From Podarcis muralis (Eukaryota), in the NCBI RefSeq assembly GCF_964188315.1, contig NC_135661.1, positions 51,026,001 through 51,090,000 on the forward strand: a DNA stretch of 64,000 bases. Direction: 5' to 3'. The stretch's first letter is position 1. The number at the start of each line of letters is the position of its first letter. Positions 27,201 through 64,000 of this stretch are shown piece after piece. The position numbers were made by a program, and so were the translations under genes. The notes under the pieces were generated by a model. It ran no database searches and was not told the DNA's origin. It saw nothing but the letters and a program-made list of their open reading frames with translations.

Positions 27201-30200
27201 TCAGAAACCAGGATGGCTTCTCTAAATCAGAGCACATGGGATAGAGCACATGAGCAAAAGCCTTGTACATACCTCTGCTTATTTAGCCAGGATTGACCCA
27301 AACTGGGTTAGTGAATAATCAACTACCTATCACATAATCTAGGCAATTAGAGTGAGCTGGGATGTAAACTACCTAAAGTTTTTATTCCATATAGGGAATA
27401 ACTGAAACATGTACAGAAGTTTCAAGTGGAGAATCTCTTCAGTATGCAGGCAGGCAAAATGCTGTATAAAGACAAGCTTTATTTGTATTCCAGATACTTC
27501 TGAACCCCAAACATTAGATACAATTTAAGAATATTCTTCTCCTACAGGATGGAAAAATAAATCCTGCAATAAGGAAAGACTTGAAAACGCCACAGAAATA
27601 CTACTGCTGTCCTATTGAAGGTTGTCCTAGAGGACCAGAAAGGCCTTTTTCACAATTTTCTCTTGTACGACAGGTATGTATTCTAACTACACTATTCAAT
27701 AAATAGAACAATATAATTTATATGGAACATCTTATTCAAGAGCCATGCATCTTTCTGAATTGCAAGATTTCTGTGTAAATGTATACCATTATAAGAGAAG
27801 CTTCATATGAATGTCATTTCATATTGTCAGTTGTCTGTTGTTTATGGGATCAGTGTGTTGGGAAAGAGCTCTCATGGAACTAGGGAGCCTGCAGCATCAT
27901 TGCACAGGTTTTATACATACTACTCTTTTGTTAGAAAATTAAACTTATTAAATGTGCTGAGATATGCCTTCAGTAGCTGAAAATGAAAGGAACAAATTGG
28001 AGGGTAATTTTACTGTAGAGCTCTGACTAGTTAATTCAATTACTCCTTTAACTCTCTGTAATATGCCCTCTTTTCAACAGAAGTACATAACTGTAAAATT
28101 TACAATGGGCCTGTGTAGATTATTGAGAACCTTAACTGCAAACTTCATGCAGGTTGCATGTCAGAGGTCTGGATCTTCTAAGAAATGCATTATCTGATTC
28201 TTAATAACTTTCGAAAGAGTGGAATTGTTAAAATCAGTTGTAGTATTTATTGAGTTGAGGTGCAGCCAGATAGTGCATATGGACTTTCATTCCCATGTTT
28301 TAACCATTTTCAGGAATTCAAGAAAAATCTTGAACCCCCTCTATCAACTCCAGTCAGTCATTTAAAAATGCATGAAAATGCATCAAAAATTATGGAAAAT
28401 TCAGTTGTTGACAGCATGCTTAAAAGTGCCTTGTCTTGCATAGACAAGGCTGGAACTTGAACAGCTTTGTGTCTCAAACATAGTACCACTTTCTTTTGTT
28501 TGGGAAGGACCATCGCTCAGTGACAGAGCACTGGCATCTCCAGGTAGGGCTCAGAAAAAAGCCCAGTCTGAAATCCTGAAGCCGCTGCCAGTCAGTGTAG
28601 ACAATACTGAACTAGATGAACCAGTGCTGTCCAAGGCAGTTTCCTATAACTTACCTAACTTTTGTTTTTATATTTCAGCATTTTATGAAAATGCATGCTG
28701 AAAAGAAGCATAAATGTGATAAATGCAGCAATTCCTATGGCACCATATGGGATCTGAAGCGACATAGTGAGGACTGTGGCAAGTCTTTCCAGTGTACTTG
28801 TGGATGCCCCTATGCTAGCAGGACAGCATTATTGTCTCATATTTATAGGACACAGCATGAGATCCCTGTTGAACATAGGTAAGGGCAACATTTTTCCTTT
28901 GTTAACTGTTTCATATATGTGCACATATATTTGCCTTAAAACATTGGAAGGGGGAGGAGTTCTAACACCATTCTGTGAAGATCACTGCCACTGACAGCTT
29001 CCCTTATCTTACCAACATATTTTTTTTAAGGATAACTGAAGAGGCATGGATTTTTCCAGGCTTTTATACAATCAATTATTATCCAACATGCTGCCACCAG
29101 TAAAAGTGATTCTGTTTGAACTATCTAAGAATTCAGAATGCATTTCCATTCAATGTGGGGAGGCGGGGTGACTACTGCTTTTGAAGTCCTTTATCAAAAT
29201 GCAGTATTATAGACTGTGTGGAATTGCAGTGCAAGTTTTACTTTTAGGTCAGCATTGTTGGCTGCTAAACTGCTGTAAGATTATTCTTTGGTTGAATAGC
29301 CTAGGCACAGAGTTTAACTGTAACTCTGACTTATTTACCCAGCAATGCAGTTTTATGCTTAACATTACCATAATTCAGTGTGTTACTGTTTTGATTTCTC
29401 TAAGTATGCTTTCAAGGCAAACAATTCACATTATTCTAAATTATGTTATAGAAATGGTAAAAGTGGTGGGGTGGGAAAGATTTGGAGGAAATGAAGGAGC
29501 ATGTGCTACAGCTGTACCTAGTCAAAGATTTTGTAATATTTACAGGGATCCACCAAGTAAGAAAAGGAAAATTGAAACCTCTGTATCCAATCAGTTGGTG
29601 GGAGAAAAACTTAAAGGAGCTTCTGCCAGTGTCCAGACCAGATGTACTAGCACTAAAGACTTGGAGACCTCTGAGATGAAGCCAGCAGCTTCCTTTGAAG
29701 ATTCTAGCTGTTCCTATACTACTAAGCAAACACAAACGCAGCCAAAAAATTCACCAAAGTTGCTTCTGCCAAAGCCAAAAGTGGCTTTGGTTAAACTCCC
29801 TGTAATGCAGCTTACTCAATTGCCTATCTTTGTATCAGCACCAGACTCTTCTGTCAAACCCGTTGTAGTTGCCGTTGATGACAAAGGCTCTGTTATGAGT
29901 ACTGTTCACTTAATGCCTCTGCCGGTAGGATTTATGATACCAGGACTGGAGGCTGAAACACTTGCATTTAAAAGCACCTTCCCCCTTTCAAAAACCAAAA
30001 ATGCTGGCAGTGTTGAGCCAGTCAGCACAGGTATCCAGGTCAATTTGGGTAAAGGGGCATCAGATAATACAATCCAAGATCTGGAAACCATATGCTACAA
30101 GAACGGGATTTGTTCAACAAATGTGCAGACGGACTTATCTTATATTTCGCAGAACTTTGTGACATCTGCAGCCTGGACTCCTGATTCATCGGTGTCCTCT

Positions 30201-31364
30201 TGTTCTCAAACAGACCTGACATTCAGCTCTCAGGTTTTGTTGCCAATTAATGTGCAGACACAGACACTGTTACCCAGTTCAAAGTTGACTTCTTCCATAG
30301 CTGCTCAGACAGATGCACTTGCACAGGCTTGCTTTCAGTCATGTGGAATTTCTCGGGAGACTCAGACCAATAGGTCGCAGAAAGATATTGATGGGAGAGT
30401 ACAAATGGACCAGGCTGTAATGTGCAATGACATTTTTGACAGTGTTAGTTCATCATTCAGTGATTCAACCACAGTGGGACTTCCAGGCAGCAACTTAATG
30501 GCTGCAGGCCTGGGTCAAAGTCTGCTACAAAGAGGAAGCTGCAAATCTTTGAGTCCAGACACTAAGTGTGAGCCAGTTATCAGCTTCAGTGCACAAAATA
30601 ATATTCTCCCACAGCAGGTTATGACAGATAATCAGACCCAGACAATGGAGTTACTGAACGATCTTGAAACTATTTTTTCGAATAACACAGCGGGTCAGTC
30701 ATTGGATAACCGTAGTCTTTTGACTGACACTAGCTCGCATGCTGGCACACCCTTGCCTTCTGGCCCTACGCAGAACGCAGGAATTGATTTTGACATTGAG
30801 GATTTCTTCACAGCCTCCAATATCCAGACACAGACAGAAGAGACCCAGCTGAACTCTGAGCCAGTCTTGGAGTTGCTAGATATTGAAACCCAGACAGATT
30901 TATTTTCAGATAATGCCACCCAGTCCTATAGCTGCAGGGGTAATCCCAATTTCTTAGGTTTGGAGATGTTTGACACACAGACCCAGACAGACTTAAATTT
31001 CTTTTTAGACAGCCCCTATTTGCCTTTGGGGAGCATCTTGAAACAGTCTACCTTCTCTATGAGCACAGACTCATCTGATACAGAAACACAGACAGAAGTG
31101 CATTTTCCTGCAAAAAATTCCTCTAACCAAATGGCAGAAAGCAAAGTCCAGCTGAATAGTGCTGAAACACAGACCATGGATAGCTGCTTTGAAACCCTTG
31201 GCAGTTTATTTCTTACTAGCAATGAGACTCAGACTGCTATGGATGACTTTTTGTTGGCTGACTTGGCCTGGAATACAATGGAGTCCCAGTTCAGTTCAGT
31301 CGAAACACAGACTTGTGCAGAATTGTGTTCTCTGTTTCAGGGTCCTGATAAATCAAACCATTGA
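20853..31364 (+). CDS. ATMIN: ATM interactor (ASCIZ), zinc-finger transcription factor; join(20853-21161,27548-27673,28679-28878,29546-31364), 2454 nt, 817 aa
   Basis: GT-AG junctions in frame. Four zinc fingers (CTVPGC..HLSKAH, CPIEGC..HFMKMH, CDKC..HSEDC, CTC..HIYRTQH), DPPSKKRK, KLLLPKPKVALVKLPVMQ, and a C-terminal array of 11 TQT-containing DYNLL1/LC8-type motifs. Confidence 0.98.
21872..22020 (+). mobile_element. Squam3-type SINE, diverged
   Basis: GGCCCATAGCT head, CTTTGCATGCAAAAAGCTCCAGGTT, and GTAGCTTCCTA tail. Confidence 0.6.
22165..22305. mobile_element. Diverged hAT-type palindromic MITE
   Basis: Internal TTTTGGACTACAGCT...CATCAGCCCCAGC...ATAGTCCA is shared with the MITEs at 9690 and 54687. 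A further old copy lies at about 32995-33130. Confidence 0.55.
23182..23390. mobile_element. Tigger-like MITE
   Basis: TIRs CAGTGGTACCTCGGGTTAC...GTAACCCGAGGTACCACTG flanked by TA on both sides. Confidence 0.9.
24125..24591. mobile_element. Tigger-like non-autonomous element, 467 bp
   Basis: TIRs CAGTGGTACCTTGGTTCTCAA...TTGAGAACCAAGGTACCACTG with a TA TSD. Confidence 0.9.
26931..27232. mobile_element. Composite MITE-like element containing an L2 3' fragment
   Basis: Two direct copies of CATACCCTC(C/T)AACATTTCT...GAAAA(T/C)AGG(G/A)ACAT at 26931 and 27131 bracket an L2 3' piece at about 26990-27110. Confidence 0.6.
28506..28650 (+). mobile_element. Squam3-type SINE abutting the ATMIN exon 3 acceptor
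   Basis: GGACCATCGCTCAGTG head, GCCGCTGCCAGTCAGTGTAGACAATACTGA body and AAGGCAGTTTCCTAT tail. Confidence 0.7.
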
Positions 31365-39594: not shown

Positions 39595-39951
39595 AAGGTA
39601 AAGGTACCCCTGCCCGTACGGGCCAGTCTTGACAGACTCTAGGGTTGTGCTCCCATCTCACTCTATAGGCCGGGGGCCAGCGCTGTCCGGAGACACTTCC
39701 GGGTCACGTGGCCAGCGTGACATCGCTGCTCTGGCGAGCCAGAGCCGCACATGGAAACGGCGTTTACCTTCCCGCTAGTAAGCGGTCCCTATTTATCTAC
39801 TTGCACCCGGGGGTGCTTTCGAACTGCTAGGTTGGCAGGCGCTGGGACCGAGCAACGGGAGCGCACCCCGCCGCGGGGATTCGAACCACCGACCTTTTGA
39901 TCGGCAAGCCCTAGGCGCTGAGGCTTTTACCCACAGCGCCACCCGCGTCCC
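39595..39951 (-). mobile_element. Full-length young Sauria SINE
   Basis: Starts GGGACGCGGGTGGCGCTG, has B box GGTTCGAATCC, retains its CpGs and ends in an (ACCTTT)2 tail. Perfect 13-bp TSD TGGCACAACTATA at 39582-39594 and 39952-39964. Confidence 0.95.
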
Positions 39952-40299
39952 TGGCACAACTATACTGCCACACAATTGACCTATGTTTTGGGGTGAGGAG
40001 GGAAATAATTATTCCACTATAAGATTTTTAAAAAACAAACAAACACAAGAGTTGGGGAATAACTCTTCTAACTGAAGAATCACGGATTAATAGATTAGAT
40101 TTTCATAACCAGCCAGAGTTCTAATGCTAAGGCTCCCTATTCTCAGCAAATTAGTTTTAGGGTATAAGCTGACAATCAAAATATCATTGCCCCAGTGTTG
40201 CAAAAAAAGTATTTTGGATTGTGCTTGATTGCAATTCTAATCTGCAACCTTACAGCACTAATATTCAGTGCCCTGTCTACAGTCTTAATATATTGCATT

Positions 40300-40305
40300 T
40301 TTATT
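40300..40305 (-). terminator. Candidate poly(A) signal for the duplicated C16orf46-like exon
   Basis: TTTATT (AATAAA on minus) about 580 nt past the stop at 40887. Confidence 0.35.
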
Positions 40306-40886
40306 TAATAATAATAATATATTGTAACATCAAAATTTGCAATATTTAAAACACAGCAAATTCAATGGTTCCCCCCATAAACCTGTGAAAACTACCTGTA
40401 AATAGGTTTCTTTCTCCCCCATAACCTAAAAGGGGCTACCACTGAAAGGGGCAGTTGGGAAGGCCAGGTGCGCCAACCAAAAACCACCCATGGTGCTTTG
40501 GGGCTCCAGATATTGGGAGAAAGAATGACCACCTTAATATATAGTCATTCTGAATTATAGTAAACTACTAGAACCAAAATAGCCTCAGAAACCAAGAGTA
40601 CCCCTTAAGTCCCAGGTCTTTGGCCTCACTGGTTTGAAATTAGTCACTGCCAATTAATTGAGATGATCAGTCCTGTTGAGTTAAAGCTCCCTCATTATTA
40701 ATGTAATTGCCCTTGCTACTGTCACAATTTTACAAGGGCAGCACAAACCATGCAGGTGTTCGTACTGCATTTAGAATAGCAATAATTGGGAAGGGAAGAT
40801 AGCTTGAATGTAATCTTAATTCAGTGCAAAGGAAAAAGTCAAACAGCTTTGAAGACAAGACAAAATAGCTGAGCACCATGGACAAG

Positions 40887-41585
40887 TCAAAGGGCGATAC
40901 ATGATTTTTGTATTTGCTTTTTCACCGTATTATTCATACCAACTTCTTTTTTTTCACTCTTCTGCTTTACCTTTTTAATTACGTGGCTATAGGAGACTGC
41001 GTCCGTGCTGTCCTCTTCCTCAGTTCTCTTGACTGCCGTTGCTCCATGCTTTGAAGGAGGCTCCAGATGCAAATTGATTACATTGCCTTCGTCTGGTCTG
41101 AAGACCAAAAATGCATTTAAGGTTATGCAGCTCAAGCTGTTAGGAGGATTACCGTGGATGACTCTGGGCAGGCCGATCTCATTATATTTCAGGATGTCAG
41201 GTTCTGTCTGCCGGTGTGAGTACTTGATTTCATATTCCTTTATTGGCAAGCTCCTTTTTTCACCTAGGAATGTTTGGATAGAGTCTAATTTCCCTCTCTT
41301 TCTGTCTCCCTCGGCATGGGCTGTCATCTTTGGGACATAGTTGTATGGTTTGATGCACGAAACTTCAATCTTTTTGTTGCTTGAAACTGGTTCTCCTTCG
41401 GTAAATTTGCCGTCCATTTTTTGTCTCTCTCTTGCCATCTGTGCTACCCAGGCCATGTTTTTCTTATTAGCAGGCACCATATTCTGGTGAGAGATGCTTG
41501 AGACTGTTTTGGTTACTCTTGGTTTCTTGGTCTCTTTTTGGATCTTACAGCATGCGAAAGGAGTAGCTCTCCCCCAGCCTTGTTC
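40887..41585 (-). CDS. Diverged duplicate of the C16orf46 terminal coding exon, 232 codons plus stop; alternative last exon or truncated paralog
   Basis: Pyrimidine-rich acceptor TTCTTTCCTTCCAG|GAA, phase 0, open to TGA at 40887. EQGWGRATPFA, FLGEKRSLPIKEYEI and KQKSEKKEVGMNNTVKKQI correspond to VQGWGKTAPFA, FQGEKRTVPIKEYSI and EQKSEKRIDTMCNAVKEQI of the exon at 45382-46536. Confidence 0.7.
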   Translation of the reverse strand, partial: EQGWGRATPFACCKIQKETKKPRVTKTVSSISHQNMVPANKKNMAWVAQMARERQKMDGKFTEGEPVSSNKKIEVSCIKPYNYVPKMTAHAEGDRKRGKLDSIQTFLGEKRSLPIKEYEIKYSHRQTEPDILKYNEIGLPRVIHGNPPNSLSCITLNAFLVFRPDEGNVINLHLEPPSKHGATAVKRTEEEDSTDAVSYSHVIKKVKQKSEKKEVGMNNTVKKQIQKSCIAL

Positions 41586-44301
41586 CTGGAAGGAAAGAAG
41601 GGAGGGGGAAAGATGGTGCCTTTAAATTCAGAGTCTTGCAGCCACACCAAAAACGTGAATCTTTCACTTTCACAAAAAACACTTAATATAATGAATTTCA
41701 CCAAACCTCTATACAAAACTTGTAGTAAATTTTGGCCAAATTCTGCTTAAACTTTTCAATGTCATGTTAGGTAACTTTTCCATGCTCTCTAGAACTTTCA
41801 TTTGAAAAATGAGAATTTTCCACTAAATGTTATATTGGATATGTCCTGCTGGTGATGATTTATTGAACCAAGTTAGTAATGAAATCCTATAAAAAAAAAC
41901 CAATGTCAGCCCTCTGGGGGCCACTTGCCAAAGTGGCGAAAGTGTAAAAGCAGGTGTAGTCCTTTTTTAAAGGATACATCGGCATGGGAGTCCTGGGAGA
42001 ATCACCAAAAAATATTCTGGTATAACAGAATCACAGTAGGGTGTCCACAGAACTGGTCAAGGTTTTTTTTAATGGATATAAATTCAGGAGGGTCTTGGGG
42101 TGCATTTGCGGGGGGGTGGGGAGGAATCAAATGATTATTTGTATCTAAAGAAGGCTCTATATTTTTAAAGCTAAATGATTATTAAATTCTGCTGTAGTCT
42201 CACATTCTTTGTGATGTACATTATCCATGCTGTTACCCCCTATTTTTCCACATTTGATATAATGGTGATTTTTTAAAAAAAACCTCAAGTGTTTAAAAGA
42301 AAATCAATAGTATGATTTTTTTTAAAAAAACACACCACAATTTTTTAAAAAAGAATGAAATCACAGCTAAATTCCACACTGTTATCATTGACAAAGTCCA
42401 CAGAAGAACTAAGAAAAAAAACTATTGCTATTTTAAAAGCTAGTTAGCAATACACACTTGTGTTAGTATGTAATGCTACACACATTTACTTGTGTATGTA
42501 ATCCTATATACACTTATTTTGGAGCATGCACCATTGAGTATTGGATTGTGGCATCTGTTCTATTTGTGCAGGGCAGAAAAGAAGAGTTAAAACAAAGGGC
42601 ATGACCCAACCAACGCTAAGATACTTTTAAAGTCCCTACTTATTTTCAGTTAGCGTTATGAACATGCTTAAATCTTTCCCACTGAAACCAGTGGAATATG
42701 CAGCCTGGCCCTGGACATACCTACCCAGAAGTGGGCCCCACTGTGTTCAAGGAGGGGAACTGGAGTCCAGCCGTCTCCAGAGGGCCCCAGCCTTCCCCCC
42801 ACACCACACCCTCGCCTAAGTAATACAAAATTCATACTTTGTTCATTGTAATGCCAAATTGCTTTTTGAAGTTTTCCTAACTGCAGCATCAGGAAGCATG
42901 ACTTGTAAGTACTATCAAGCATGGCTTTTCAGCTCACTAACTTGGTTTAGCTGGTAAGTAACAAGATCAATCATTTTAAATTCACTGAAAAGTAGCTGCT
43001 ATTTATTTTGGTTCACTCATCAATGGAATCATTAGAAAAGAAACTTCAAGTTTATTTATGCTCACAAAGAATTAAAATTTATTGACATTTTATTCTGCTT
43101 GTAATTTTGAAAAATGAAAACACATATTAATGGGTCCTTAAATATGACATGTTATTTTCTGTAAAGCCATTATTTCACAAGGTACAAGTCTACATAGGTG
43201 AAGACTGACAACCATTTAACTGTCTGTATTTTGTATGAGAGGTAAAACTTTCATCCACTTGGCCTAACAGGATCACACAGGTAACTGACTCAGCAAGTGG
43301 TTACAGCTATAGCATGGTTAAGCAACCACTTTGTAAACGACTGCTTGTATCCATCCATTATCCAAAACTTTGCTTAAGCCCTGTTTTGTTTTGTTTTAAA
43401 CTGGAGCACAGAATTTCACAATTCTTAGCAGTAAATGTGATGTGCAATGAGGGTAGCAGGAAGCCCTTCAACAATGTTCACTAAAACCAGCATTTCTACA
43501 GAAGTGGTAGTAGGAGCAAGAGGAAGGGTTAAGTCTAGCAGCCAATCCAAGAAAAGGCAATTCAAATAGACAGTTTATAATGGTTCGAGCAATTTTGTCT
43601 CCTATAATGGGGGGGTGAGGAATTCACACCATTTAATTGGTGGTTCACCCCCAAAAATCTTTGCCCCACACTTGTAGAAACAGGTGTGGTTTCTTAAAGA
43701 TATTGCATGTTTGTTACAACATTTCTGTCAGTCACTGTTTTAATCCCTTCTTTGTAGGCACTGATGAATCCTGAAAAAATGGTCATGCTATTGAACACTT
43801 TTGCTTTAAATAATTTCATGCCTGTTTTAAGAACAAGAAAGCAAGCTGCTTGTCAAAAAAGTTCATTTTTTCAACTAGCCTACTGTGTTCTTGCAGGAGG
43901 TTTATGCACATGAATTCCTGGTGAGAGCCCTTGCTCCAAAAGGAAAAGGCCACTCAGCTCTCAGATTTTTTTTGCATAAGAACTCAAAATATTTAGTTCA
44001 AGGACTACGATCAGTTTATGTGCAAACTTGTTTGTTTGAAACTAAAAAGAATTTGGCAAGATTTTATAATAAAACTACTTGAACAAGTTTCTGTACAATT
44101 GATCAAATATAAGTGGATTCCATGAATCATGGGTGAGTGACATTGGGACTCTTGCAATTGGATATCCAGAAATGTCATTACCTTCCTGCTACTCCAAATG
44201 CATCAGATAAGGTGTAGGATAATTATGGCAGATGTTGACAGGAAAATCTCTTGGATTGAAATACTGAGGAACATGCTGTCACTGTGCATACAGAAAAGTA
44301 T

Positions 44302-44307
44302 TTTATT
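44302..44307 (-). terminator. Candidate poly(A) signal of the main C16orf46 transcript
   Basis: TTTATT about 1.08 kb past the stop at 45382. Confidence 0.4.
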
Positions 44308-45381
44308 GAAGCTATCTAGATTATAAAGCAATGTGAGTTACCTAATTTTGCAGAGGGGGACAAGTCCTAGCTAACATAAACAAATCAAGAAGTATATACA
44401 GTCAATTCTACACACACAAATATAACTAAATATTAACTTTGCTTCCTTAGTCTTATCTACACATTGTTTGAACATTAAACATAAAAGAAAACTTTAAAAA
44501 TAAACTTTTTACAACATCTAAAAACAGTTAAGGCTTTGCACAAATTGGAGGGCGCTTGAAAATAGTACATCATTGTGGCAGAGACTACGCAGACAATTTT
44601 TGGTACTTTTCTAGATTCCATATGGTGAAGCACTTGGTCTAGGCCTGTACAACTGTACAACTCATTGAGATAAATATAGCTCATGAGCAACTTAGTCTGG
44701 CCTGACAGATATTTGACAGCCTTCTATTGCCATCCTTGACAGAGAGCAAAAACAGGCATTGTGGCTATGTATGGCTCAATGACTTCCAAATTGTACGGGC
44801 TTAATTTAGGCAAAATCTGATCCCTTGCCCATCTATTCTGAGTTTGGTGCAGTAGTTCAAGTATTCCTTGAGAAGACAAACTACACAGGTCATGGTGCTT
44901 CTGCAGTGGTCCTTCCCAAGCAAAAGGACTAATAAGAACGAAACAGACCAAAGTAGCTTGCATTTACCATACATACAGTGGGGACTGGAAGTACTGAAAC
45001 GCTATGCCCAATTTTCTAAATAAGAACTAGCTAGGTGTACTTTTAAAGACAAAAAGTTTTTGGCAAACTGGGGGCATCATCCAGGCAATGCACATTAAGG
45101 CTCATCTCTGAGAGCCTGAGTCTACACGGCAGACTCTATTAGTTCAACTAAACATATTTAAGGATCTACTGAAACCATTATCATATTGTAAGAGGTAATC
45201 AATTGGTATTTTAATTTTGTACAGAAATGAGTGGCAGTCAACTCTATTCAAAATAGCACCTATGCAAATTAACAAATCTGCCCAGTCTGCTTTACAATGA
45301 CTTTTCAGTATTTTTTCTCATTATACAGAGTGCTCCAAACAAATCCATGAATAGCCCAACAAGAAATTACAATTTAAAAAG

Positions 45382-48300
45382 TCAGGTCAGCCTAAAGGGC
45401 AATGCAGCTATTGCAACACGGCTGACCGTTAAGGAAGGGAATAGTCCAGAAAGCAGAGGGATCTCCTGTGTTTTTGACTCATTTCCTTGTTTGGTTCCAG
45501 TGTGACTCCTGCTTCTGGTGCAAGGGTCTTGCATCTCATTAGCTTTGTTGATTCGCGCTCCTTTTTTATGCAGAAAATGCATGCTGTTGAGATGATTGTG
45601 TCTTCGCAGTGCTATTGAATTAGACATGGTTGCCATTTTTGGATCTGGTGCAAATGCACAATGCCAGTAGCAACGATCTGGGTTTCTTGAGATGAATGAA
45701 GTCTTGGAAAGCCTTGAGTCAAAAGAGGCTATTTCATGCATTTTTATTTGCTCCTTCACTGCATTACACATTGTGTCTATTCTTTTTTCACTCTTTTGCT
45801 CTTTGGTTTTAAAAACCTGACCACAGCAACTTGTCTCGGAAACAGCATGGAATGATTTTTCACTTGCCTGGGAAGTAACAGTCTTGCTTTTCTTTGCTGA
45901 AGGATCCAGGGTGGTTTTGAGAGTTGCATCTTTCAGAGGTGGTAGTACTAATGATGGCTTAACAGTAGCAGTTTCAGTGCCAACATGATTACATATGGGA
46001 GGCTCGTAGCCTTTTGTGTCTTTGTATTTCACAGTTTCTAGAGTTTTGGGTTTTCCTGTAGTCAGTATACTATACTCCTTTATTGGCACTGTTCTCTTTT
46101 CTCCTTGGAAGAGAGGACTCTCTTTCATTAGAAAAAATCTCCTTTCACTTAAAGTAGCTTGAGCATCCTTTAAGGACACTTTTTTCTTTTCTCCTTGGGA
46201 TGTCTGACCAGAATATATTTTGCCATAACAGTTTTCCTTTTTAGAGTCTTCTGTTGCAGAAGAGTCTATGGTTGCACTCTGTAAAAGCAGTGTCTGTTGT
46301 TTTTCTGGAATACGATCTGTGGCAGCACATGTACTTAATTTGAAATCAGTTTTCAATGGTTCTGTACCCTTGGGGTCTTGTTCCAAACTTTTGTCAATAA
46401 CTTGATTCAGATCTAAGCAGTAAAGGCATCCACTGACAGACTGGCATCCACTGACAGACTCACTTGTCTTTGCTTTTCTAGCTTTCTTCTGTAGCTGAAG
46501 ATAAGCAAATGGGGCTGTTTTGCCCCAGCCTTGGACCTGAGAGCAAAATGATGTGAATATAAGTTAGTATTTTAAGCAGCAGAGCAACTAGATTTACTGG
46601 TAATCTCTTGCTAATTTTAACTGTGGACCAATATGCAGGAAAAGCTATTCTCTGCTCAAAAAAAGTGTAATTGAAATGAGGTTCCTAGACCATTTTAAAA
46701 TAATGCCCCATTATCAAGAAAGTCAGATAAGACTGTTGAGCAGACCTTAAATGAGTCATAGTTTGGTACTAAACAAGAAGGTCCAGCACAAGTCAACTCC
46801 TGACTTTTGTTTCATACCAGTCTACTTAAATAACAAAGCTGTGCATATCATATTATGGCTAATATTTAGTCTAAAATGGGAGGACCAAAAGCTATTATTC
46901 ATGTTCTTAATGCTTTCTTTAGAGCTCTTCACTAACACAGCATTCCTACCAATGGGACAGCAGAAGGCAGAGGATTTGAATAACTCAAAGACATTTTACT
47001 GGACACATGGTTTCAAAACAAAAAGGTGGAAAGCGTGGTGCTCTTTTTTATTTGTCCTTTCTAAGTGCTTGTCTTCTAAGTTTTTATTATTTCTTTCCTG
47101 ATGTTTCCAGTAGAAGGAAAATACATATGTCAGTTCCAAGGCTGACATTTATTTATCTCAATTTATTTATTGGGCAGGGGTGGAGTCAGGGATATGGAAA
47201 GGATTTAGATCCAAACCAACCCCTTTCTTTGCTCCAACCAACATTTGAACTTTGACATTGGTAAGACAAATGGCCACAGTGACTTCCATAGTGGCTGGAA
47301 GAGGCCTTATGAGGTTCTCCACCCTCAACTTGGAGATTTGAAACATCCAATGGCCCCCTGGCACACCCTCCCAGGGACCATGGGATTCTAGCCTCAATAC
47401 TGAATTATTTTTTTAAGTAATAGAAAGTATAAAATATCATTTTATAGAAGAAAGGAAGAGACTTGCTTTTTTTAAAATGCAGACAATGGGCTAAAGCAAT
47501 TATCTGTACTTCAGTGCTCCATAGACACACTATACTATACTATACTATACTATACTATACTATACTATACTATACTATACTTCCGTGCACAACTGGAGGT
47601 GCTGTACCTCTAGAAAACACAAGTTGCTTTTCTCCAGAACAGCCCCATTGCCAGTAGTAGGAAGTCAGCTGTGAAGCTTGCATAATCTCACCCTGGCACA
47701 ACAAGTGTTCTGATCAATCCTTTCAGGGTTTTTTTAAAAAATAGTGAATATTATATCTACCATGAAGTTCTCAGAGCACCTTGCAGTAAACTCACAAGTT
47801 CTTTTCAATTCAGTTTTAAGGACAAGTCCTCCTAAGGCAGTGTACCATCATATTTAAACCAATATCCTAAAACCACACCACAATTAATATAAACAACAGA
47901 ATAGAGCACATGAAAGAAATAAAAGCCAGCAACACCATCCCCAAAAAGTTGCACACAACAACCAAAAAAACTCTTTAAGGCCCATTTAAAACTCTGAAGC
48001 AGGAGGCCAATTAAGTTCTTATGGGAGGGAGATCCAAAGATGCAGGACTATCACTGAAAAGGCCCTGTACTTGGTGTCCAGAAATCTGATTGGTCTATCT
48101 GTAAAGACAGTCATAAATAGAAAGAACTTCACCCAAAGCAAAAAAAAGTCTGAATAATCTGTGCCAGGCAAAACACTGAAGCATGGTGGCATTGCTAGCA
48201 TGGAGTCCTATGTACCATACAAAAGCCAAAATAGGTACCATCACAGCAGCCAGGCTGAGCTCTTGTAAGCAAACCCTTAGGTTATGTTAGCTTTGCTTCT

Positions 48301-51300: not shown

Positions 51301-51969
51301 CCATATTCTGAAGTAATTGAAGATAACAAATAGTTTCCAAAGGCCTCTCCAAGTCCACTAGAGTAGTCAGACTTGGATTTTCCACAGCATGTATGGACAA
51401 GGCAAAGCTAACTCTGTCTAGGCAGGGCTATAGGTAGTATTGCAACTTAAGGTGAGGGAAGGTGCATGCATCCACAGCTGCAACATTTATATTGAAAAGA
51501 TTCAGCAAGAGAGACCTCTATAACTAAATGGACTTCTGCAACGGTATCACCTGATGGATTTGAAACCAATGATATACTTCTTATACTCATCAGAATGCAC
51601 ATTTGAACACAAGATGCTTCAACTGATACTACATTTGAACCAGCCCCTAGGAGACAAGTGGTGCCCATTTATAAACTACACTATATTATAGAAGATTCTT
51701 TTTAATGGATAATTGGTGACTGAGAGTATAAATGTTCACAACATAAGATTCTTACTCACAGCTTCCTCCCATCCTGTTCCATTAGTACAATCCAAGGACC
51801 TTTCCTCTTGTTCATTTATGCTGTTACTGATGCTTAGAAGGGTGTAAATCTGATTCCTCTCCCGCCTCTCATTTGGGTAGGTGCAGCGCAATTCTGTTTC
51901 CACAATTCTTGTATTTCCAGCGACTCTTTCAGACTCTATTTCATTTTGCTTCTGTTCAGAGGAAGTCAT
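45382..51969 (-). CDS. C16orf46: C16orf46 homolog, uncharacterised; complement(join(45382-46536,51760-51969)), 454 aa
   Basis: A 210-nt first coding exon ends GTGWEEA|GTGAGT and the next begins CAG|VQGWG, reproducing the human TGWEEA/VQGWG junction. LVLPPLK and C-terminal PSLTVSRV also match, as does the position next to ATMIN. Confidence 0.9.
47529..47580. repeat. (ACTAT)n pentanucleotide microsatellite, about 10 perfect units
   Basis: Directly visible in the C16orf46 intron. Confidence 0.95.
49030..49172 (+). mobile_element. tRNA-derived SINE with CR1-type 3' tail
   Basis: B box GGTTCGATCCCC, then GGTTGGACTAGATGATCCTCAGGGTCCCTTCCAAC and an ATTCTATGATTCTAT tail. Confidence 0.8.
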
Positions 51970-62829: not shown

Positions 62830-64000
62830 ACTCCCGAGCGCGGCCGATTTATTGAAAAATGCATTACATGGGATTAAACTGGATTTCCTCCTTTTTAAAT
62901 CTACGCTGGCAGATCCGGCGCGCAAGCCAGCTGCATCTCCTCTCCGCCGCGGACTTAGGTTTCCCAGGGAGCCTTTGATTCTGCTATTCCGGTAACAGAC
63001 TGGAGCGGGGAGGGAGGGAGGCTTCTCCGGGGGAATCCCTCCCGCCGCCCCCTCCCTTTGCTTTGGGATCAAGTACTTAAGGACACGGCAGGGGGGTGGT
63101 GAGGGGGAAGAAGAAGAGGAAGGCGCGCGGGTGGCACAATCGTCACAGTTTGCGGGGGGGGCGGGTTGATCGTGAGCCGAGATGACAAGGAGGGAGGCGG
63201 CGGGGGCAGAGGAGCGAGCAGGCGAGGCGGAGATGAAGGGGCGGAGAGCGGAGCGGTGATGAATTGGAAAGATGACACGAGGCCCGGGATGCGTATATTT
63301 TGCTGCGGCGGCGGCGGCTGCATGACTCCACGACGTCAGCAGCAGCCCCGGAGCCGCGGCGCGTCACGGTGGTCTCCCCCTCCATCGTGCCGGGGTCTAC
63401 GGGAGTAGGGCTGCCACCGCCAGACGCGGAGCTCAGCGGGCAACTCACGGTCACAGCAGCGACGTGCGCGCTCGGTTGTTCCCGCGGCCGCGAACGAGAG
63501 GAACGTCTTCCCAGCACCGAGGGAGAAGAGAGGCGCCGCGCCGCGCCGGGCTCCGAGCTGGATCGCGACCCGTCGCGTCTGCAAGCCGGCCAAGGTGAGC
63601 CCCGCAGCCCAGCCCCGAGGTAGCGGGAAAGGTGCCCAGGCGCGCCATGGCGCCGCCGGAGAGCCGGCTGTAGCCGCCGTGAACGGAGGCTCCTGCCCGA
63701 CGGCCCCCTCCGAGGAGAGCGCCCCGCCACTGCCGCCGCCATGGACAAGGCCGGCTCCGTGCACGCGTCGGTGCCCACGCCGCCGCCGCGCCTCTACCTC
63801 CCGCGCAACTTCAGCTGCAGCGCCTGCCTCTACGGCAGCCTAGCCGACCAGTGCAAGGGGGGCTGCAGCCCGGAGCCCGAGCCCGTCGAGGGGCCGCTGT
63901 CGTCGTCGTCTCCGCCGCCCTGCTCCTCGCCGCCGCCGCCCTCCCCGCCGGTGACCCCAGAGGCGGCGGCAGCGGCTGTCGCCCCCCCGAAGCCGCCCCC
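62830..64000 (+). promoter_or_regulatory. CpG island, promoter and 5' exon(s) of an unidentified + strand gene
   Basis: Very CpG-rich, CRE-like GACGTCA at about 63332, and a strong donor AAG|GTGAGC at 63594/63595. Confidence 0.85.
63741..64000 (+). CDS. 5' part of an unidentified protein-coding gene, open to the window edge: MDKAGSVHASVPTPPPRLYLPRNFSCSACLYGSLADQCKGGCSPEPEPVEGPLSSSSPPP...
   Basis: Optimal Kozak context GCCGCCGCCATGG, 86 codons without a stop, strong GC3 bias and a non-repetitive Cys/aromatic segment. Absent from the ORF track because the stop is outside the window. Confidence 0.7.
   Translation, partial: MDKAGSVHASVPTPPPRLYLPRNFSCSACLYGSLADQCKGGCSPEPEPVEGPLSSSSPPPCSSPPPPSPPVTPEAAAAAVAPPKPP

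Follow-up and report, generated by a model that had tools for sequence, protein, structure and literature searches.

A tandem exon duplicate that very probably provides an alternative 3'-terminal coding exon of C16orf46 in Podarcis muralis

The exon designated copy B here is very probably a real alternative 3'-terminal coding exon of C16orf46 in Podarcis muralis, a tandem duplicate of a whole exon that predates the divergence of squamates, turtles and archosaurs. It is found on the minus strand of the window (the whole stretch of 64,000 nucleotides of contig NC_135661.1 that was analysed, in whose coordinates all positions are given), downstream of the main, proximal large coding exon of the same gene, designated copy A. 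An initial annotation had viewed copy B as an old exon duplicate kept as a last exon and spliced from the donor at 51760, and the RNA, the conservation across species and the omega values reported below agree with this.

In the arrangement proposed, one promoter and one first exon would serve both forms of the gene. In the long form, the donor after 51760 would be joined to the acceptor of copy A at 46536, and the transcript would end at a poly(A) cluster near 43.07 kb and encode a protein of 454 aa. In the short form, the same donor would skip copy A and be joined to the acceptor of copy B at 41585, and the transcript would end near 40.0-40.3 kb and encode a protein of 302 aa.

Methods

RNA was aligned to positions 40250-46249 and consisted of three contig sets and one raw stranded read set (X22). 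The acceptor of copy A, at 46536, lies outside this interval. The genomic loci compared were those of Zootoca, Thamnophis, Sceloporus, Eublepharis, Alligator, Natator, Cygnus and Cynocephalus, and Hemicordylus was included as protein only.

Results

The features of the locus are listed in Table 1. The first coding exon (exon 1), which is common to both isoforms, begins with an ATG at 51969, has 70 codons and ends in phase 0 with the donor GCT/GTGAGT after 51760 (throughout, a slash within a sequence marks a splice site or a join). It matches the Pfam family DUF4529 over positions 7-70 (E 6.9e-12, 45.6 bits). Copy A has 384 codons and a stop, ends in ..LFPSLTVSRVAIAALPFRLT and yields the 454-aa isoform. 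Its DUF4529 match scores 98.5 bits, and it is 98% identical to its counterpart in Podarcis lilfordi and one residue off a P. raffonei protein over the 223 aligned residues of the latter.

Table 1. Features of the C16orf46 locus in the window and models of the short isoform in other species
Feature	Position or length	Strand	Basis or remark
Copy B, distal alternative last coding exon of C16orf46 (very probable)	40887..41585	-	ORF, homology, RNA junction, orthologues, omega
Copy B acceptor, long pyrimidine tract and CAG	41586..41612	-	sequence, cross-species conservation, RNA depth
Copy B 3' UTR	40275..40886	-	contig ends, signals; 3' end approximate
Copy A, main (proximal) large coding exon	45382..46536	-	translation, Pfam, RNA coverage
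Copy A 3' UTR, roughly 2.3 kb	43070..45381	-	RNA contigs, sense reads; lower boundary approximate
Possible internal donor in copy A, ACG/GTCAGC, PSLT/VSRV	45421..45429, cut 45427/45426	-	sequence, other species' models
C16orf46 first coding exon (exon 1)	51760..51969	-	sequence, splice context, Pfam, spliced-read ends
Zootoca vivipara, NCBI model isoform X2	301 aa		window exon 91% identical; join ..TGWEEA/EQGWGR..
Thamnophis elegans, NCBI model isoform X3	293 aa		exon-1-to-copy-B short isoform
Anolis sagrei, NCBI model isoform X2	313 aa		exon-1-to-copy-B short isoform

Within copy A, at 46440-46480 on the minus strand, the Podarcis sequence reads SESVSGCQSVSGCLYC where other squamates have SESV.GCLYC. 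The change is an in-frame tandem duplication of 6 codons that is present in the window and in P. lilfordi, and it is probably shared with Zootoca, whose exon has equal length.

Translation of the minus strand from 41585 gives a frame that stays open for 232 codons, up to a TGA at 40889..40887. Directly 5' of this frame, ttccccctcccttctttccttccag forms a strong acceptor, in which a 25-nt pyrimidine-rich tract is followed by CAG. Hence, translation and splice context both agree with the initial description of a 232-codon frame behind a clean polypyrimidine/CAG acceptor. The position of this acceptor is homologous to that of the copy A acceptor, and the first residues encoded are EQGWGRATPFA in copy B versus VQGWGKTAPFA in copy A (at 46536). 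The two copies share 27% identity in a BLASTP alignment (E 6e-11) that runs end to end over the first ~270 residues of copy A, and their comparison revealed the motif pairs GEKRSLPIKEYEI and GEKRTVPIKEYSI, and KQKSEKK..NNTVKKQI and EQKSEKR..CNAVKEQI. Copy B alone matches Pfam PF15032 (DUF4529/C16orf46) with 28.9 bits against a cut-off of 27, covering 72-286 of the 406 profile positions. The kept motifs and the similar start residues, both pointed out in the initial annotation, were thus verified, and the similarity is above chance by BLASTP and by Pfam. The conserved stretch of ~115 residues at the C-terminus of copy A, with the sequence ..LLSGLFPSLTVSRV.., is absent from copy B. Therefore, the copy B isoform is a truncated member of the DUF4529 family and not a full one.

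Copies A and B are neighbours on the same strand of one gene, have equal phase and use homologous splice sites. The sequence confirms the earlier prediction that splicing of the 51760 donor to 41585 is in phase 0 and gives a product of 302 aa that lacks the C-terminal region. It had also been suggested that a shifted-frame FD just past the copy B stop hints at truncation by a frameshift. This is plausible, though minor: the +1 frame across the stop has PFD by eye, and an in-frame stretch similar to PFD is kept in the gecko tail (..VPPFLCP) and in alligator copy B (..ALFDHWLP). A tblastn search (word size 2, E up to 10) found no second copy of exon 1 between copies A and B, from 41.6 to 45.4 kb, which agrees with what had been noted before. 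A candidate third copy of the large exon at 39772..39662, a weak match to copy B (E 0.2), was not reproduced with the copy B profile and was dropped.

The junction that would generate the short form was found in RNA. In run X6, a contig spans 40298-41585 and then continues with 29 nt that are foreign to this stretch, and in run X22, which is from another study, three raw reads break off at 41585, leaving loose ends with a median of 104 nt. The overhangs share a consensus that has a unique match, to 51760-51789, where exon 1 has its final 30 bases, and therefore the predicted 51760 to 41585 junction, which had been proposed as the check on the initial reading, exists in Podarcis RNA. The support is thin, amounting to one contig and three reads from two studies. 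The sense-strand reads of X22 reach a depth of 3-4 as far as 41585 and are absent from 41650 to 43049, and the depth over copy B is about 1.2-4.3 versus 0.6-1.9 over copy A.

Transcripts of the two copies have separate 3' ends. On the copy B side, contigs end at 40298 (X6) and at 40275 (X1), and one X5 contig continues past 40250. Overlapping ATTAAA/AATAAA signals are found at 40309..40300 on the minus strand, and the AATAAA that had been placed at 40300 was located at 40305..40300, where it fits these contig ends. From copy A, contigs and sense-strand reads run without a break into the 3' UTR, from 46249 down to 43078-43169, the loose end at 43169 being an Illumina adapter, and this UTR has its own AATAAA cluster (plus-strand starts 43078 and 43089, also 43002 and 43051). 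The exon-1-to-copy-A join is known from the annotated Podarcis proteins P0011 and P0019, and copy A is transcribed in the RNA runs. Copies A and B each have their own UTR and poly(A) signals. Each thus serves as a terminal exon with a separate poly(A) site, which is the layout of alternative last exons.

Two contigs read through the copy B acceptor without splicing, one from X1 as far as 42062 and one from X5 as far as 41781, and the sequence that they cover over 41586-42062 may represent a retained intron, pre-mRNA or, in unstranded data, antisense signal. Reads in the opposite orientation were also seen in X22 at 40850-41049, 41850-42249 and 42650-43049, with a depth of 0.2-2.6, and could come from an antisense transcript or from imperfect strandedness.

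The RNA also bears on a different reading of the locus, in which the main use of copy B is as an internal or downstream exon in a tandem protein of about 672 aa, made up of exon 1, a cut copy A and copy B, and the exon-1-to-B join is copy A skipping. Gene models in which copy A is joined to copy B are available for P. lilfordi (671 aa), Hemicordylus X2 (661), Sceloporus (654), Anolis carolinensis X2, Natator (622) and Pelodiscus X1 (660), the join being made via PSLT/VSRV (in P0011, P0014, P0020, P0027, P0043 and P0057), and residues 433-655 of the Notechis protein (655 aa) match copy B. In the window, copy A measures 1110 nt up to the possible internal donor and both of its ends are then in phase 0, so that an A-to-B join would be in frame. 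However, no A-to-B joint was found in the three Podarcis contig sets or in the raw reads, in which both sides are covered, and every loose end at 41585 is exon-1 sequence. The straight run of RNA coverage from copy A into its 2.3-kb UTR also argues against this form. Moreover, the internal donor (GTCAGC) is weak, the Val codon in the ..TVSRV.. tail accounts for its GT, this tail is conserved in mammals too, though none showed copy B, and some of the A-to-B gene models may have arisen by ab initio chaining. Hence, we regard this reading as unlikely. The term mutually exclusive, used for the two exons in the initial annotation, fits the four Podarcis runs, which include no A-to-B joint, but not the models from other species that join both copies, and strict mutual exclusivity is therefore not proven, a tandem A+B form being unproven in Podarcis muralis and possible elsewhere.

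Copy B is not confined to Podarcis. It is present with an intact frame and acceptor in all four of the other squamate genomes (Zootoca, Sceloporus, Thamnophis and Eublepharis) and was also found in protein models of Anolis and Hemicordylus. The open frame is 219-239 codons long in these four squamates, 214 in Natator and 294 in Alligator. The acceptor reads ..ccag/G or ..ctag/G in six other species, and in every reptile locus copy B lies 3.3-5.4 kb downstream of the copy A stop. The search across species that had been suggested at the outset therefore recovered orthologues in squamates, turtles and the alligator, and a decayed remnant in the swan. Copy B lies in an orthologous locus, convergent with ATMIN/ASCIZ downstream; an ASCIZ zinc-finger gene is found downstream of C16orf46 on the opposite strand in Zootoca, Thamnophis and Sceloporus.

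Short isoforms that join exon 1 to copy B have already been modelled in the automatic annotation by NCBI of three species (Table 1) under the name "uncharacterized protein C16orf46 homolog isoform X2/X3". They have the same TGWEEA/EQGWG join as the window and the stop context ..QKSCIAL or ..QKSCTAL. Unlike the present analysis, these models carry no comment on the duplicate nature of the exon, its age or the selection acting on it. For the window's own species, no short isoform was found in the protein search, in which the cluster of the Zootoca protein had a single member. Consequently, the earlier description of the exon as hidden applies to P. muralis, for which no such model was found, but not to Zootoca, Thamnophis and Anolis sagrei.

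Selection on the two copies was compared among five squamates using the codon model GY+F3X4. For copy B, omega is 0.388 (lnL -2764.87 vs -2809.03 at omega = 1), so that omega = 1 is rejected by 44 log-likelihood units, with the small caveat that the null also fixed kappa at 2. For copy A, omega is 0.467 and omega = 1 is likewise rejected. Pairwise Nei-Gojobori values among squamates range from 0.14 to 0.53 for copy B and from 0.24 to 0.43 for copy A, with the closest pair, Podarcis and Zootoca, giving 0.53 for copy B from only 17 non-synonymous and 8 synonymous changes. Between Natator and Alligator, omega is 0.51 for copy B and 0.45 for copy A. Hence, purifying selection acts on copy B with about the same strength as on copy A, and the dN/dS analysis that had been called for bears out the earlier argument that neutral decay of copy B was unlikely.

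These values have to be set against the possibility that copy B is a pseudo-exon with no function, in which case a partial duplicate in decay would occasionally be spliced into a transcript with no protein role. The low identity between the copies, the lost C-terminal region, a tail that is frame-labile between lineages, the predicted disorder, the decay in the swan and the early ends in the Dermochelys and Mauremys models could all be understood in this way. However, none of the squamates examined (gecko, lacertids, iguanian and snake) has a disrupted frame or acceptor, an omega of 0.39 represents a constraint that matches the main exon, and the RNA depth of copy B is at least that of copy A in one stranded run. 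In addition, the actual look of neutral decay for copy B can be seen in the swan remnant. We therefore consider a pseudo-exon to be very unlikely. It is scarcely credible that copy B stands alone as a tandem paralogue, with a promoter of its own and a 197-aa ORF that starts at an internal Met at 41480. Despite a separate gene in the Phrynosoma annotation (JD844_000210 beside JD844_000209), the two contigs that reach beyond the acceptor, to 41781 and 42062 on its upstream side, and the presence of a Met at the 41480 position in Phrynosoma and one ENA protein, reads join copy B to exon 1, no copy of exon 1 lies between A and B, the stranded raw reads give no sense coverage over 41650-43049, the 35 codons upstream of the Met are conserved and start exactly at the conserved acceptor, and the Met is absent from this position in Thamnophis and Anolis.

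A maximum likelihood tree of 16 A and 10 B sequences placed all of the B copies in one clade (100/99), within which alligator and turtles are separated from squamates, matching the species tree. Therefore, a single duplication occurred before lepidosaurs split from turtles and archosaurs. The split between squamates and archelosaurs is dated to roughly 280 million years ago. The earlier suggestion of an old exon duplication stands, and its age is extended, as it is not specific to squamates and predates the split between squamates, turtles and crocodilians. An upper bound on the age derived from the tree was rejected, because the mammal outgroup makes the branch between sauropsid A+B and mammals the root. 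Copy B forms an unresolved four-way fork with the A copies of turtles, archosaurs and squamates and, with the root on the mammal branch, an older origin with loss in mammals therefore also fits. In the colugo (Cynocephalus) locus, the one mammal examined, no second copy was found within 10 kb downstream, which fits either an origin after the mammal split or a loss in mammals.

In the alligator, the copy B frame continues into C-terminal homology and, past the stop, the same frame, with further stops, reads ..QLLPPLTVGGITMPMLPFRV. Retention of this decayed C-terminal part shows that the original duplicate comprised the whole exon. In Natator depressus, a C-terminal remnant with stops was found at L004:25483-25806, 5.2 kb downstream of the copy B stop, leaving about 5 kb (with no Ns) between the two parts of the old duplicate, and in the models of Dermochelys and Mauremys copy B is cut short, at about 17 and 36 residues, respectively. 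The C-terminal profile, which recovers copy A strongly in every species, found such remnants only in the alligator and Natator, plus a marginal match in the swan (E 0.029). Downstream of copy B, its sole squamate match was a non-significant one in Thamnophis (E 0.69), and no remnant was detected in the window, Zootoca, Sceloporus or Eublepharis.

The swan (Cygnus atratus) has a decayed copy B at L005:14506-15470, about 2.9 kb downstream of its main exon. Profile matches fall in frames 0 and 1 and the marginal C-terminal match in frame 2, many stops are present, and the remnant starts behind a recognisable acceptor, ..tttcacag/GTAAAAG. Judged by its sequence, this remnant represents neutral decay of copy B, in contrast to the squamate copies.

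The 302-aa and 454-aa proteins have their N-terminal 70 residues in common, and the remainder of the short form is a paralogous middle region. It retains the motifs GEKRxLPIKEYEI, TLNALLVF.P....INLHLEP and KQKS.K...VKKQI, and is without the ~115 C-terminal residues that are the best conserved in the family (..HWHCA..SNSIALR..MHFLH..LLSGLFPSLTVSRV..). Among five squamates, 60 of the 240 aligned columns of copy B are invariant, and these cluster in GKLDS..FLGEKRxLPxKxYEIxYS, TLNAxLVFxP, NxHLEP and the N-terminal W.R.TPF.CC. The first of these motifs is also found in copy A, and mammals have KEKKSLQIKEY. Copy B tails end in ..QKSCIAL in lacertids, ..QKSCTAL in the snake, ..NTKIMYHPLICP in iguanians, where another frame is used, and ..VPPFLCP in the gecko. 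The reading frame of the tail thus differs between lineages, so that the extreme C-terminus of copy B is not constrained. An AlphaFold2 model of the Zootoca short isoform (19-row alignment) was uninformative, with a mean pLDDT of 39, a pTM of 0.12 and one short helix. The copy B region is apparently disordered with short linear motifs, a description that the model fits but does not prove.

The genes on either side of C16orf46 were also considered. The convergent neighbour ATMIN/ASCIZ has its large last exon in a 727-codon ORF at 29181-31364 on the plus strand. This ORF shares 97% identity with its counterpart in Zootoca, 83% in Sceloporus and 67% in Thamnophis, and in these species the gene has ASCIZ zinc-finger Pfam families. 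The Pfam search gave no match for this ORF or for the ORF at 63143-63778. On the other side, 63741-63881 on the plus strand matches the N-terminus of a Sceloporus gene with a CBM_21 domain (PPP1R3-like), with 51% identity over 49 aa (E 1.4e-4). This gene lies divergently upstream of C16orf46 in Sceloporus, and it is also upstream in the alligator, swan and gecko.

One further Podarcis gene model is unusual. P0019, from Podarcis raffonei (293 aa), consists of exon 1 and part of copy A and stops at ..KSKTVTSQ, which corresponds to around 45.7 kb in the window. Its NCBI name is "COX assembly mitochondrial protein 2 homolog isoform X4", and the Anolis isoforms X5 and X3 end similarly. This suggests a merged CMC2-C16orf46 gene model, possibly with use of another splice donor inside copy A.

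Discussion

Copies A and B are a C-terminal case of tandem-duplicated exon substitution, which here takes the form of two alternative last exons. Substitutions of this kind at the C-terminus are a recognised and enriched class in human genes, accounting for 77 of 236 events (PMC9741552, Genome Biol Evol 2022), and tandem-duplicated exon substitutions in human genes have also been catalogued elsewhere (PMC8373072, NAR 2021). As in those cases, the homologous exons of C16orf46 lie side by side on one strand, in the same phase and with homologous acceptors, the copies share an upstream exon, the isoforms differ in the homologous region, and the arrangement is ancient and conserved. However, it differs from the catalogued substitutions in several respects. 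The duplicated unit is very large, at about 1.15 kb or roughly 85% of the coding sequence, the copies are only 27% identical, and about a third of the original exon is gone from copy B, with the result that the swap also truncates the protein. Furthermore, the event is, as sampled, specific to sauropsids and was not found in the one mammal examined, which sets it apart from the human events. The locus also resembles other alternative last exons in having proximal and distal terminal exons with their own poly(A) signals and a single donor that chooses between two acceptors. Though most alternative last exons are unrelated in sequence, copies A and B are paralogues.

There is almost no functional literature on C16orf46: the gene is mentioned in 34 papers, in the title of only one, and of the 15 papers listed none deals with its evolution or with reptiles. 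In the scheme proposed here, the short form would be translated, and the choice between the copies would be a regulated case of splicing-coupled alternative polyadenylation. The functions of the 302-aa and 454-aa proteins may differ, for example if the short form keeps the partners of the N-terminus and the middle motif without the C-terminal role. That C16orf46 is a two-product gene in reptiles, whose short form has been kept for roughly 280 million years with a distinct function of its own, is a tentative proposal, towards which we do not lean. One possibility is that the short form would be a natural antagonist or an adaptor, having the shared N-terminus and GEKRxLPIKEY without the C-terminal module. 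There may also be a third, tandem A+B protein in some lineages.

General principles are unchanged by these findings, as C-terminal swaps of tandem-duplicated exons were already a recognised class. For annotation, the Podarcis gene models should carry the 302-aa isoform, and models that fuse both copies, or that merge C16orf46 with CMC2, deserve a check. For the gene itself, the locus represents a natural experiment in which a duplicate has been kept in squamates, truncated in turtles and the alligator, and left to decay in the swan. The motifs that survive in both copies at 27% identity show which are indispensable in a disordered protein, and the C-terminal module of C16orf46 is shown to be separable from the rest. 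If reptile C16orf46 is indeed a two-product gene, the independent loss in birds, and in mammals either absence or loss, would signal that the role of C16orf46 changed in a lineage-specific way.
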